64,000 nucleotides of DNA from Antechinus flavipes (taxonomy: Eukaryota). Of this stretch, positions 3,609-26,533 are shown one piece after another (position 1 is the stretch's first letter; each line of letters starts with the position of its first letter). Under the pieces are notes generated by a model. The model made no database searches, was not told where the DNA came from, and saw nothing but the letters and a program-made list of their open reading frames with translations. The translations under genes and the position numbers were made by a program. The stretch lies in assembly GCF_016432865.1 (NCBI RefSeq), contig NC_067400.1, positions 63,612,001 to 63,676,000 on the forward strand, written 5' to 3'.

Positions 3609-4708
3609 CTGCAATACAACAGTTCCTTCTGGGCCGGACTAGAGAAGGTCAGAGCTTAAAGGGGAGCCGGCTGGCAGAGGGTACGTGCCAGTCCTGTCAG
3701 GCAGGTATCTTCACAAGAACAATCCTCCCCCGCCAAAGATCTGGGTGTGACTCTTCCACTCCTGGGCCCCCTTTGCCTACCCCTTCCATCCAGTATAATC
3801 CGAACGGTCTAAGATCCTTCCCAGCTGCCCACCTCAGACTCTCTCAGCCCTGAGACACAACTCAGCAACCGCATTCCCACTATACCCTGTCTGGGTCCCC
3901 CCGACCCGGCACGAGTCCAGACTCACTCGGGGGGGTAAATGTGCCCCATGGAACTCGGGGGGAGGCTAGATTGTGGGGCAAATGGGAGCCGGTGTGTAAC
4001 AGAGGGAGCCAGGGCCAGGGGACAGGTAATGTCAGGGCCTGGGCGGACAGGGAGGGTTTGCCCCGAACGGACACGAGGTGATGCTTCCAGCAGGAGATTT
4101 CTCCCCCGGGGAAGGCGAAAATATTTATTTGTCAGGCAGAACCTGGATTCCTGACTTGCAAAGTCAAATATGCTTCCCAGGCTGAGCCCCCAGTCCTAAA
4201 TCCCACAGACCTCCCCCCCAGGGAGGGTCCTGCTAAGGGGGTAGAGAGGAGATAGAGAGTCGGGGTACGAGGTTGGTGGGGGGCAGGGTAAGCAAGAGAA
4301 GGCACGAGTGAGGATGCAGAATGAGAAGGTAGACGGGCTGGGCCAGGAATGAGGAACTAGGGAGAGACCTGATTGTCTATTATGGGAAGGAGATAAGAGT
4401 GATCCTACAAAAGCCGGACCAGCAGGGAGGATGTCAGAGGGAGCCCGGTTTGTTCGGGAGGCACACAGAAACTTCTGTTAGTGCTGTCTAACCGGGCACG
4501 GGCTGCCCCATCGGGTGGCAAGCTCCCCGACCCGGGAAATATTCAGGCAAAAGCGACTAAGACTCAAGGATGGCGCAGATTTATCCAGCAGGCGGGTTCA
4601 GATTAGGCGGATTCTGAGGTGCCATGATTCTGGGAGAAGGGACAGAGGGAATGGGGAGCTGGGAAAGGGAGGTCGAGGGAGGGAAAAGAGGGAAGAAGGA
4701 GCACCTAC

Positions 4709-4765
4709 CTAAAGTGTGGTCTGCACACTCAATGTAGATGTTGGGGGAGCAGATGGTCTCGTTGC
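4709..4765 (-). CDS. ASIC4: ASIC4 exon 5 (NETICSPNIYIECADHTL)
   Basis: CAG acceptor, GTAGGT donor, 57 nt, phase 1/1. Confidence 0.95.
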   Translation of the reverse strand, partial: ATRPSAPPTSTLSVQTTL

Positions 4766-4901
4766 CTGGGGGAGAGGAGAGTGTCCTTGGAGTCCCCAGT
4801 CCCTTCCCCGCCATGCAAGCCCTGCCCTCCGGATGGCACATGCACAAAGGCAGGGCCCCGGGGCACCGGCTGCTAGGAAGGGGGTTCCCGGGGGCACCCA
4901 C

Positions 4902-14505: not shown

Positions 14506-14645
14506 NNNNNNNNNNNNNNNNNNNNNNNNNNNNNNNNNNNNNNNNNNNNNNNNNNNNNNNNNNNNNNNNNNNNNNNNNNNNNNNNNNNNNNNNNNNNNNN
14601 NNNNNNNNNNNNNNNNNNNNNNNNNNNNNNNNNNNNNNNNNNNNN
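14506..14645. other. Assembly gap; other gaps at 36857-37008, 40269-40447, 47906-48060, 61772-61939
   Basis: N runs, mostly beside low-complexity or GC-rich DNA, indicating a short-read draft. Confidence 0.99.
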
Positions 14646-21513: not shown

Positions 21514-22526
21514 CACAGGACAAACAGGGATTAAAACTCCCGGAGCGGAGTGTCTGGGTCTGTGCATGTGCACATAGGGAGGCAGCCCCACCAGCCTACT
21601 GTGTGTCGATGAGCTCCTGACATGCAGAGTGTGAGTTGAGAGAGATCATGGTAATCGCGGGAGGGAATGACACTGGATAACGGCCCTCCCTGCTCCTCCT
21701 GTGTTCCACGACCCTGACACTGAGGATGGAGATGAGCGGTGATCCGTGGGGGGGGGGGGCACCCCAAACCCAGCACCCAGGGATCTGTAGGGTGGGTAAG
21801 AAACAGTGGCCAGGATGAGGGATTTTTTGAAGGGGGTGTGTGGGGGGGAGATGTGCACCTCAGAATGAATGAGTGAGCCTGAGTGTGAGAGCCACAGACT
21901 ATAAGAGAGAAAGAGCTGTTAGTGTTAACGACCGAGTGAAAAGCCAGAACTGAGCATGGGGGACAACATGAAAGGGGGAGTGTGTGAGAGAGAAAGACGC
22001 TGGCACTGTGTAAATGTCCACGAGGTCCTTCTAGGTAGTGCCCGTGCCAGCTCCACAAGATGCCCCCAAACCCTTCCTCGCCTGCTCTCCCTCAATCCCT
22101 TGAGCCCCCAACCTTTGACTCTGCTACTTGCCCAAGGTGGGAGGGGGCCAGCAGGAGTCAGAGAAGGTAAAAATAGGGAGGGGGGAGAAGACACAAGCCC
22201 CGACTTTCTGGAGAGATGTTCTCTAGAGTGGCAGGGCTCAGAAGCCTCCCACTGAGCTGCAGCCGGGGGCTGCCCCATCCCTTCAGTGCCAGCCCCCTGG
22301 CACCAGGGTGCCCCCTCCAAACCCTGGCAGTGCTGCAGTGGCAGGAGCAGCAAGGACAGGGCAAGCCCCTCGAGGCTTCCAAAGAGCTGTGGCTCTAGAG
22401 TGGAGAGAGGGACCGCTAAGCCCAGGAGAGATCCCGGTGGCAGAGGAAAAGGGGAGCCCCCATCCCACCCCCCCAGCCCAGAGGGCCCCCCCTAGAGCCA
22501 GGGGCCAGCCAGCCGGCGGGACTCAC

Positions 22527-23108
22527 CACAGAGAAGTTGCTGGCGGAGCAGTGGTGGCCACTGAAGTTGCAGCTCTTGAGCATGTCGGCCAGCTGGTGGC
22601 CAGTGCGGTTCAGGATGTCCACCATGTCCGGCTCGGGGTACCGAAGGCCGGCCGCCCGGTGTCCGTCTCTGTCCTTAGGGGGCAGCCCCGTCAAGTTGGC
22701 CAGGTGGAAGATGTCAGCGTCGCTGAGAGCAGAGTGGCGGAAGCGGTTGATGTTGCAAAGGGTGACGGCCGGGAAGCCCAGGACGGGGGCTACCCCGGCT
22801 GGGTCCAGGGAGACCAGGTGAGGCCGAGCCAGGTAGCTGCGGGCCAGGCCCACCGCCTGGTAAAGGAAGGCGGCCAGGGAGGCCAGAAGGGCCAGTGCCC
22901 ACAGGCTCCTGCGCAGCCCTCGAGGTCCCCGGCCACAGGCGTGCCCCAAGCCGTGCAGGGTGCTGGAGCTGGCAAAGGTGGCCAGGTCCCTCGGGGGCGC
23001 CCCCTGGCACGCTGCCCCCAGCAGGCTCTGCTCGTCCCCCTCTTCCTTCTCCTTCGGTTTGGCATCCTCCTCGGAAAATTTGATTTTGCACACTATCTCG
23101 ATAGGCAT
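22527..23108 (-). CDS. ASIC4: ASIC4 exon 1 CDS (MPIEIVCKIKF...STLHG...FPAVTLCNINRFR...CSASNFSV)
   Basis: ATG at 23108, GTGAGT donor 22521-22526, 582 nt; HG motif, TM1 and FPAVTLCN ENaC/DEG signature. Confidence 0.97.
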
Positions 23109-23411
23109 CTGTCCCTGGCTGCTCGGACCCGGCGGCCGGAGCGTCCCTGCCCGCTGTCCCCTCCCCGCCTGGCAGCCCGGGCTCCTCTCCCCAAGTGGTT
23201 GGTGACAGCAGCCGCTCCTCCAAACTCCAGCCGAGGAGGGGGAGGGGGCGGAGGGAGGGGAGCTGCTCACACTCCCAGCAGCTCCGCAGCCCTGGCTGCC
23301 GCCGCCGCTTGTCTCTCTCCTCGATCGTCTCCTTGTGGCTTCGCTTATCAGCAGCAGCACAGCTGTCAGCCCCTGCGTGTGTCCCTGCGAGCGCTCGCTC
23401 CGCCACGCCGC

Positions 23412-23432
23412 TCAGCCCGCGCCGCTCAGCAT
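23412..23432 (-). other. uORF MLSGAG* in frame with the ASIC4 start codon
   Basis: ATG CTG AGC GGC GCG GGC TGA; 324 nt upstream of and in frame with ATG 23108. Confidence 0.6.
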
Positions 23433-23800
23433 GTGCTCCGAAGCCCACCCCGCGCTTAATAATTCAGGACATGTCAACAGCGTTTCACCGGCGGGCGGGC
23501 GGACAGCAGGAGCCGGGCCAGGGGAGGGGAGTGCCAGGGGCGGGAGCGGACCCCGGCCCGGGGCCGGGGCGTCCCGCTCCGCCCCCCACCTCAGGCGCGA
23601 CCCCCAAACTCTCTTCGCGCCCTACCCACCCCCACACCCAATCACATGACAGAATCCCAGCTCTGCCCTGCTCCCTTTATTCCCTGCTGGGCCCGAGGCC
23701 GTGCCCCTGGGCGGCCCCCGCGCTGGTTCACGGATGAGCACCACCCCCAAGGCCCCACCCAGGCCCGCGGGGGGACCCCTGCCATCCCCGCTGCTCCCAC
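23430..23800 (-). promoter_or_regulatory. ASIC4: ASIC4 CpG-rich promoter region
   Basis: High CpG density, GC boxes (ccgcccc near 23579), AT-rich AATTATTAA near 23455-23463; TSS not determinable. Confidence 0.6.
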
Positions 23801-26533
23801 TACCACCCCCGGCCTTGTATCTGACCCAGCTGCCCCATTCTCAGCTCGCCAAGCTGCTCTACCTGAGCCACTTGTTTGAATAGCTCGTGAACTTGAGAGG
23901 AGGAAAAGAGGGTAGGGAATCCCGCACTAGCTCCTGTTCGCCTCCCTAAGGCTCCCTCCAGGTTCTGGCTGCAGAGCTTTGCCCCAGGAGGAGCCGGGTC
24001 TCCTTCCAGGCTCCGACCCTCCCCTCGCTCCCCAAGTTCCCAGACCCTCCCAGGCAGCAGCAGCAGAGGGGGTCCTCCCGGCTGACTGGCAGCAGCTGCG
24101 GCTCCCTTGCCTCCCCAGATGGCATGGCAAGGCTGGTGAGAGTGCTCTCGGCTCAGGTAGAGAGCGAAAGCGAGGTAGGCAGGGTGTCCCACCTGGATGA
24201 GGGAGTGTGGGTGTGGAGGAGGGCGTGTTTGATGGGCCTCCCTTGGGGAAGTGAGGAGAAACTTCTGGGGAGAGATTGAGTGTAACTGGGGGTGGGATTG
24301 AAGCAAGAAAGATGAAAATGCTTTTTAAGATCGTGGGGGGAGGAGGAGAGGGTGCTGCCTTCCCAAGTGTGGAAGCACTCAGGGACTACCACAGCATCTT
24401 GAGGTCTAAAAAAAATCATCCATGCCAGGCTGGGGGGAGGGAGGATACTTGCATCGGTGACATGGCCAGGCTTAGAGCTGCCGTGGCCCTGAGCCTAGCA
24501 GGGGAACACCCGATGGGATGAGCTGGCTGTCCTGAGGTGGGGTGAGGGAGACACGCTGGGAGTTGTGGCAGGGAGAAGCATGTGGGCTGGCCTGGGAGCA
24601 TTAGCACGTGCCCTCCAGGGACGGGGGGTGGCCGGAGAGGAACGGGATGCGCTTTTTGGGGAGGGGATGTCGGGCGGGGGTAAGGAGGAGCAGTGTGTGG
24701 GAGCAAGTGCTTTCAGAGGGGAGGGAGCACATGTCCCGGGGGAAAGGGGGGGGGCTGATTAATCGGAGCGCTAATGAGCAGCAGGGAGAGGAAGCACGGA
24801 GGGGCGGGGGGGAGGCCGCTCCATCGATCCAGCGCCGCGGAACCAGCAGCAGAAAAAAAAAAGTGCGAAGGGAATCGATCTGAGGGAAACGGCAGCTGCT
24901 GGGGATTAGAGCCCAAAGCCCGCCTGCCGCCACCCCCTCCCTCCTCCCATGCACCAGAGCTGCCCATCGACACCCGCCGGGGCATTCCAGGGGCGGGGGC
25001 ATTCAACCCCGGCTTTAGCCCTACCGGGAGAGAGGAGAATGTCTCCCCGGGGGTCCCTGTCGGAGAAATGGCCCGTGTTCCACGCCAGCTCAGTTCCAGT
25101 CCTACCTGGCGCTCTCCTGCCCTCCCCGGAGGCGTCAGGGCCCTCCCCAAGCATACCCTCAATCCCTCTGACCCCAACTCCTGGTCAGACGTAGCCCGCC
25201 TGACCGTTTCGGGAGGGAGACTTAGGGCCCAAAGAGCTGATCTGCAGCAGTGTTCCCAGGAGGAAGCTGGGGACACGGGTGCCTGGCTCCCTAAAATGAT
25301 CTTCTTGTAGGATCCCTGTGGATGGGATCCTCGAGATCCATGGGCTTCAACTTCCAACTGAAAGCTGATTGTGGGGTTTTGAGAGGAGGAGTCCGTCCTG
25401 GGGACCTCCGAGAGCTGGAAGTGATGTGTTGTGGAAAATGCAAATGTTGCTAAGGTGACCGCAGGATGGGGCAACCTCCCCCTTTTTTTCTTTCTTCCTG
25501 CCCCCAGCAATGCCCCGACTTTCTCTAGTCCTAAACTCCCCCTCTTTTCCAGTCTCCAGTCCATGCTTCCCCTCCCTTCCACCCCCCACCCCCCACCATC
25601 CTCCTCTACCCTTTTCTCTCCTTCTCCTCCCCTTTCTCCCAGTATTGATTTTTCTTTACTGGGTTTTTTTAAAGGTGATTTAATTGCTTTTTTAAGGTTA
25701 CTTCAGTCTGGGTCTTTGCCAAGGAAATGAGGGGCCTGGCCACCTCTCCCCATTCTCAAGCTTAAACTCCCAGTCTCCCATATGTAAATTCCCAATTACC
25801 TATATGCCCTTAACTCCTTCCCCAGATTTACCGTCTTTCCAAAACCTTAGGTCCTCTCTTTCCTGCTCCCCATGGGCATGCATAGTAAATCCCACGTCAC
25901 CCCTCCTTTTCCCCCTAAGGGGGGAAAGCAGGAAAAGCTCAGACAGTAATGTGGCTGTAAAATTCCACATGCAGATGGAAAAAGGGGTATCATCATGTTT
26001 GAAATGGGGGTTCTGTGGTAGATGACTTGACACCACCAAGGGACAGCTCCCAGAGCCTTAAAACACAAAGCAATTGTGAACAGTTCCCGTCCACCCCTCA
26101 ACAACCTCTGCACCACCAACCAGTGTTCCCATCACCTGTCTCCACAGAAATGGCCCCATATCCTAAACTCCCCATCCCTTTTGCTTATTTACCTCATTTG
26201 CCACCACACCCTGCTGCTGCTCTAAAACCACCCTCCCCAAGCCCCTGTCTTCTTAATTCTTCACCCCTGATTGCTCCCCATTTTCCCCTGTAGCCCCCCA
26301 TTCCCATTCTCCCCCCCTCTCTCCGCTTCCCTGCCTCCTCTCTGCTCTCTCCCTGCCCGGCTGCAGTTGGGTGATAATCTCCCTCATTTAGCCTCCCGGC
26401 TGCTTCCCCGGCTCATTGCCCAGCCGGTCCCTGGGGCCCAGCCCAGATTCCTCCCCCTCCCCAATCCCTATAGCCCATTCTCTCCCCCCCACAATCCTTT
26501 TTTTGCTTCCCCCACAGTAATGCAGACTTGTTC

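Follow-up and report, generated by a model that had tools for sequence, protein, structure and literature searches.

The 324 nucleotides (nt) that separate an upstream ATG (uATG) from the main ATG of ASIC4 in Antechinus flavipes are very probably non-coding, with the MPIEIV start at 23108 as the true beginning of the protein, and a comparison with the same region in other amniotes points to a promoter-proximal or 5' leader that carries three blocks selected as nucleotides. We read the leader in this way because the frame of the uATG is lost between species, because its variable sites lack codon periodicity, and because its insertions and deletions are not multiples of three. The window referred to throughout is the 64,000-nt stretch of DNA that was analysed, which carries ASIC4 on its minus strand.

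The upstream ATG and its reading frame

The coding part of ASIC4 exon 1 (22527..23108, minus strand, 194 codons) runs from MPIEIV to SNFSV. It matches the Pfam ASC family (PF00858, E = 5.6e-22), and its product has 99% identity with the ASIC4 proteins of koala and sugar glider (Petaurus). The splice donor GTGAGT begins at 22526 and the coding sequence ends at 22527, which is a small correction to the initial annotation. The other exons continue to ~1565, beyond an intron of ~16 kb. Among them, positions 4620-4769 (minus strand) match the 539-aa ASIC4 of platypus alone (47% identity), the 520-aa isoform of koala giving no match. The 539-aa and 520-aa forms differ at this site by an alternative segment of 19 residues, and its conservation looks poor in the window.

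The uATG occupies 23432-23430 and is followed by CTG AGC GGC GCG GGC and a TGA at 23414-23412, giving a six-codon open reading frame, MLSGAG* (23412..23432, minus strand), that is identical in Petaurus. It lies 324 nt upstream of the main ATG (23108-23106) and in the same frame, and the TGA is the sole in-frame stop between the two, leaving 101 open codons (303 nt) in frame ahead of MPIEIV. Positions read afresh from the minus strand agree on all of these points with the initial annotation, which had also described the extension peptide of primate-type ASIC4 as split over two frames. This too is what we find, with LAGTHAGADSCAAADKRSHKETIEERDKRR encoded in a second open frame (ORF 22714..23448) and SQGCGAAGS in the main, MPIEIV frame. 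The open stretch itself is unremarkable, as an in-frame stop is absent from 17% of dinucleotide shuffles of the leader (71% G+C). The G+C content of the leader region in the window is 71-76%, and a CpG island at ~22600-23800 encloses the leader. The uATG has a weak context, both -3 and +4 being C. On the opposite strand, a 383-codon open frame (22308-23459, plus strand) runs antisense to exon 1 and the leader; a frame of this kind is expected at 70% G+C, and there is no gene evidence for it.

To follow the frame across species, we compared the window with DNA from sugar glider (L001), platypus (L002), narwhal (L003), Chinese hamster (L004), raccoon dog (L005), muntjac (L006) and the turtle Emydura (L007), so that marsupials are represented by two sequences (the window and Petaurus) and placentals by four; the frames of primates and cattle were taken from annotated proteins rather than from DNA. 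The frame from the uATG to MPIEIV is kept in only two of seven DNA sequences, the window at 324 nt and the hamster at 345 nt, where the uATG is fused in frame to MPIEIV. In the annotated primate and cattle proteins the uATG frame is likewise open through to MPIEIV. The sugar glider, with a spacing of 326 nt, has the same six codons and stop, out of frame with the main ATG, while in muntjac (374 nt), raccoon dog (383 nt) and turtle (326 nt) the uATG opens an out-of-frame ORF that overlaps the real start, and in narwhal (415 nt) it reads 100 codons before a stop. When the main frame is instead read upstream from MPIEIV, the first in-frame stop lies 101 codons away in the window, 119 in sugar glider and 177 in hamster, and 55, 35, 10 and 63 codons away in raccoon dog, muntjac, narwhal and turtle, respectively; only the hamster, among the seven DNA sequences, has an in-frame ATG before that stop. 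We have discounted the narwhal, because toothed whales, with the exception of the sperm whale, are reported to carry ASIC4 as a pseudogene (PMC9774174). In the narwhal locus (L003:4200-4330), the uATG frame is moved by a 20-nt expansion of a CTCG repeat, which the deposited protein model avoids by splicing.

The lengths of the gaps in the leader give the same picture. In our alignment (A1) they measure 5, 23 or 43, 11-32, 14, 2, 1, 1, 5 and 37 nt, which is not a triplet pattern, and even the two marsupials differ by indels of 2, 1 and 1 nt in the 3' leader, all three of which break the frame. Furthermore, variable sites phased on the uATG frame in the four placentals are distributed 5/6/7 over the three codon positions, compared with 6/6/49 in exon 1 (Fisher P 0.002), in a test of modest power given the few substitutions in the leader. 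The proposal of the initial annotation that the DNA of the leader is conserved and its protein frame is not is therefore upheld: the blocks described below are 86-96% identical, the spacing between uATG and ATG varies, and following frame and indel phase along the alignment shows the frame lost and the phases broken even between the two marsupials. One part of the leader does keep its frame in placentals. From the uATG to the third conserved block (block C), hamster, raccoon dog and muntjac keep the frame and so, judged from annotated proteins, do primates and cattle, and up to block C the repeat-length differences among these frame-keeping placentals are multiples of three (12, 21 nt). The CAG/CGG repeat in particular varies in multiples of three nt between three of the four placentals, and the narwhal differs from these by 12 or 21 nt too. 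This partial maintenance leaves room for a placental-specific translated extension or a long upstream open reading frame (uORF), both of which are weighed below.

Three conserved blocks in the leader

Conservation in the leader is concentrated in three short blocks, all given here on the minus strand. Block A (23419..23489) has 94-96% identity to the four placentals and 99% to Petaurus, and directly upstream of it, above 23489, identity drops to 51-66%. It contains the motif GTTGACATGTC (23478-23468), a TATA-like AATTATTAAG (23464-23455) and an 11-mer, AGCACATGCTG (23437-23427), that includes the uATG. A variable spacer with runs of gaps in the alignment (23395..23418) connects it to block B; relative to the window, placentals carry 5 and 23 additional nt here, in CTCG-type repeats, and narwhal 5 and 43. 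Block B (23297..23394) is 92-94% identical to placentals and contains TGACAGCTGT (23368-23359), in which an E-box CAGCTG is combined with TGACAG, a GATA-like CTGATAAG (23351-23344), GAGACGATCGA (23331-23321) and GAGACAAGC (23315-23307). The spacings between these motifs, 17, 20 and 16 nt, are the same in all eight species. Block C (CCAGGGCTGCGGAGCTGCTGGGAGTG, 23269..23296) is 86-93% identical to placentals and is preceded by a CGG/CAG repeat whose length varies by 11-32 nt between lineages. The remaining 3' part of the leader (23109..23268) is poorly conserved, with 64-69% identity to placentals and indels of 1, 2, 5, 14 and 37 nt between species. The transcription-factor names attached to these motifs come from matches to consensus sequences and are leads only.

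Exon 1 provides an internal standard for these values. Its identity to placentals by codon position is ~.91/.93/.65, with third positions at 62-70%, and the blocks (86-96%) stand well above both these third positions and the flanking leader (51-69%). By this measure, the blocks are as constrained at every position as are the codon positions that determine amino acids. The uATG is invariant in the six therians and the turtle, as are all 11 nt of the 11-mer around it, which is more than a start codon needs. We propose that the uATG owes its survival to its place in this invariant 11-mer within block A and not to any encoded peptide. Two further candidates in block B were considered and rejected. 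An alternative conserved peptide (frame LTAV.LISE.TRRRS) has no consistent start and coincides with the uATG frame only in turtle and, after the 20-nt insertion, in narwhal, and in turtle a stop interrupts the other frame. A canonical RE1/NRSE site was judged by eye to have its half-site spacing off by one.

The blocks reach well beyond therian mammals. The platypus keeps block B (84% identity, E = 4e-29) and block C, ~830-960 nt upstream of its ATG, and its block A is degraded and lacks the ATG segment. Between block C and the ASIC4 ATG, the platypus locus has a CT-rich minisatellite of ~780 nt (L002:3230-4000) with units like CTCCGAGACTCCCCCTGCCT; its leader is either very long or intron-containing. 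In the turtle, block B is found at 84.5% identity (E = 6e-18) and the core of block A is kept in order, with GTTGACATGTC, AATTATTAAG and AGCACATGCTG following one another and the starts of the latter two 28 nt apart, versus 27 nt in therians. Block C was not detected in the turtle locus. Relative to the ATG, the turtle blocks occupy -373 to -191, nearly as in marsupials. Blocks A and B are thus kept across amniotes, and B and C in platypus.

Other conserved blocks lie farther upstream of ASIC4 on the minus strand, at 24695-24942, 25574-25752 and 26282-26463, with 79-88% identity between marsupial and placentals, and the first two of these are also kept in platypus. These blocks probably represent the final exons of GMPPA, the upstream neighbour. 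In the hamster locus (L004), a nucleotidyl-transferase gene ends ~1.9 kb before ASIC4.

Candidate roles of the leader

The explanation that we favour is that three short blocks under strong nucleotide-level selection are held in a leader whose GC-rich repeat spacers are free to vary in length, and that the blocks would act mainly as DNA, as a core promoter with transcription-factor sites (TATA-like, E-box CAGCTG, TGACAG and GATA-like TGATAAG). The sharp onset of conservation, the TATA-like AATTATTAAG placed 27-28 nt before AGCACATGCTG, and the CpG island together suggest block A as the candidate core promoter. The TATA-like box begins ~28-30 nt before the uATG itself. Transcription may therefore begin at or very near the uATG, in which case the uATG would be too near the cap for use; if the transcript instead starts farther upstream, the uATG would act as a mild leaky-scanning brake, with a six-codon uORF in marsupials. 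The arrangement resembles known conserved core-promoter elements (TATA-like, initiator and downstream sites) in its sharp conservation onset and rigid motif spacing, in having its TATA-like motif 27-28 nt before an 11-mer that contains CA, and in a position relative to the gene that is kept from turtle to mammals. It differs from them in its imperfect TATA-like and initiator matches and in downstream blocks that could work at the RNA level instead. The literature that we searched contained nothing linking ASIC4 to a uORF, a mapped transcription start site or a conserved non-coding element. Viewed as a whole, the ASIC4 leader belongs to a familiar class, that of conserved promoter or leader elements with an incidental ATG.

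A functional uORF is possible, though we consider it doubtful, and it would bear on the mechanism only, being compatible with a non-coding leader. It would require the uATG to lie within the mRNA and to be translated, thereby lowering the translation of ASIC4, with reinitiation after six codons in marsupials and with long or overlapping ORFs in other species bypassed by leaky scanning. The persistence of the uATG from turtle to therians fits this proposal, as do its weak context, which suits leaky scanning, and the lack, in six of seven species, of any further ATG before the main one; that depletion of ATG, however, is not significant (P 0.03-0.37 per species). Conserved uORF brakes similarly keep a start codon over a long span in a leader otherwise free of ATG while the peptide changes freely. 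Classical examples, however, also preserve length, stop position or overlap geometry, and the uATG ORF of ASIC4 keeps none of these, passing from six codons to 100 codons, to out-of-frame overlap and to in-frame fusion. Its membership of the mRNA is putative, and the platypus retains blocks B and C yet has no uATG. The invariance of 11 nt where three would serve, and a TATA-like box whose distance could place the cap at the uATG, also speak against it. The initial annotation had described the leader as a conserved regulatory 5' UTR with a uORF, and this description stands only in part: the leader behaves as non-coding sequence, but neither the length nor the stop of the uORF is conserved and the platypus is without the uATG. 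The core-promoter and uORF mechanisms are compatible and not exclusive.

It is also conceivable, and in our estimation less likely than a uORF, that the leader module of ~220 nt, kept for >300 million years at the start of ASIC4, is a dedicated post-transcriptional control element. The 11-mer and blocks B and C would then act in the mRNA through start-site choice, protein binding or message localisation, by a mechanism that tolerates any reading frame downstream. A comparison of the leader with Rfam gave no match above chance (none better than E 0.1). In RNAalifold, the covariation term was unfavourable, with double changes in 2 of 128 pairs, in blocks that are too invariant for the test to have power.

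Long ASIC4 models and the annotated start

Many placental ASIC4 models begin at the uATG. We compared the long form that the initial annotation had described by way of non-human proteins only. The models of Gorilla (647 aa), Mandrillus (666 aa) and Callithrix (642 aa) begin MLSGAAG, read through LAGTHAGADSCAGADKGSHKETIEERDK and QGCGAAGS, and have 127 residues ahead of MPIEIV. Comparable long models exist for Chinese hamster (Cricetulus, 637 aa), cattle (Bos, 642 and 623 aa), bison (flagged as low quality), muntjac and raccoon dog, and across the long ASIC4 (ACCN4) models the extension measures 115-129 aa. These proteins use the same uATG (MLSGA) and the same DNA blocks as the window, translated there as THAGADSCAGADKGSHKETIEERDK and QGCGAAGS, whereas the window has a stop at codon 7 of the uATG frame and its peptide lies over two frames. 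In the 3' half of the extension, cattle read FRRAAAATAATPEGTGG where primates read LSLEEQPLPPPPLGRAPG in the annotated proteins, a difference of the kind that a frame change produces. Database entries for ASIC4 also show mixing with another gene: a shrew entry (P0045) joins ASIC4 to TMEM198, and the 90% cluster of koala ASIC4 also contains many TMEM198 proteins, probably through such chimeras. This mixing is a database artefact and can mislead the transfer of names.

A real extended ASIC4, gained after the marsupial split and present in some placentals only (primates, hamster and cattle), seems improbable to us. The frame is open into MPIEIV in the hamster DNA and in the annotated primate and cattle proteins, it is maintained as far as block C in several placentals, and the first ~85 residues of the extension are nearly identical among primates, hamster and cattle. 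That near-identity, however, matches the conservation of the DNA blocks and comes without an excess of third-position changes, and the uATG of raccoon dog and of muntjac, at 383 and 374 nt, is not in the MPIEIV frame. The change of frame between cattle and primates in the 3' half counts against an extended protein as well, as does the fact that several long models are flagged as low quality or splice around frameshifts, as in narwhal. Production of an extension in marsupials, by readthrough of the stop or by near-cognate initiation in the 303-nt open stretch, is more improbable still. The 101 open codons would permit it, but dinucleotide shuffles are equally open in 17% of cases, the indels of 2, 1 and 1 nt in Petaurus break the relation of the MPIEIV frame to the uATG and TGA, and the main-frame translation of the leader is not conserved in any other species beyond the DNA blocks. 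The initial annotation had raised both of these routes, and neither agrees with the out-of-frame uATG and TGA of Petaurus or with the in-frame stops at 55, 35 and 63 codons in raccoon dog, muntjac and turtle. Least probable of all is an assembly or sequencing error that produced the stop and the split of the frames. A region of 71-76% G+C is of an error-prone type, but no N run lies near, the closest being that in ASIC4 intron 1 (14506-14645), and the independent Petaurus assembly has the identical ATG to TGA segment and equal spacer lengths all the way from block A to block C. We exclude an error on the ground that this second marsupial has the same MLSGAG* and not an intact extension in one frame.

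A non-coding leader with MPIEIV as the start thus remains our preferred reading, and under it the long extension in the annotations is at best specific to some lineages and is most likely an open frame that arose by accident. This agrees with the suspicion of the initial annotation that a human-type extension is lineage-specific or misannotated: the ORF that follows the uATG varies by lineage, there is no codon periodicity, and the indels are not triplets. Gene predictors have reported a 115-129-aa 'extension' only in the case where the frame is open into MPIEIV.

For annotation, this means that the channel should be described from MPIEIV, its conserved start, and that the 127-residue extension in many ASIC4 entries should be left out of it. 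Experimental work on ASIC4 begins the protein at MPIEIV, and forward trafficking depends on its first 18 residues (PMC4678866); the choice of start site matters because these residues direct the trafficking of the channel. Additionally, the leader would provide a compact, deeply conserved control region with defined motifs for a channel that is still poorly understood in both regulation and function.
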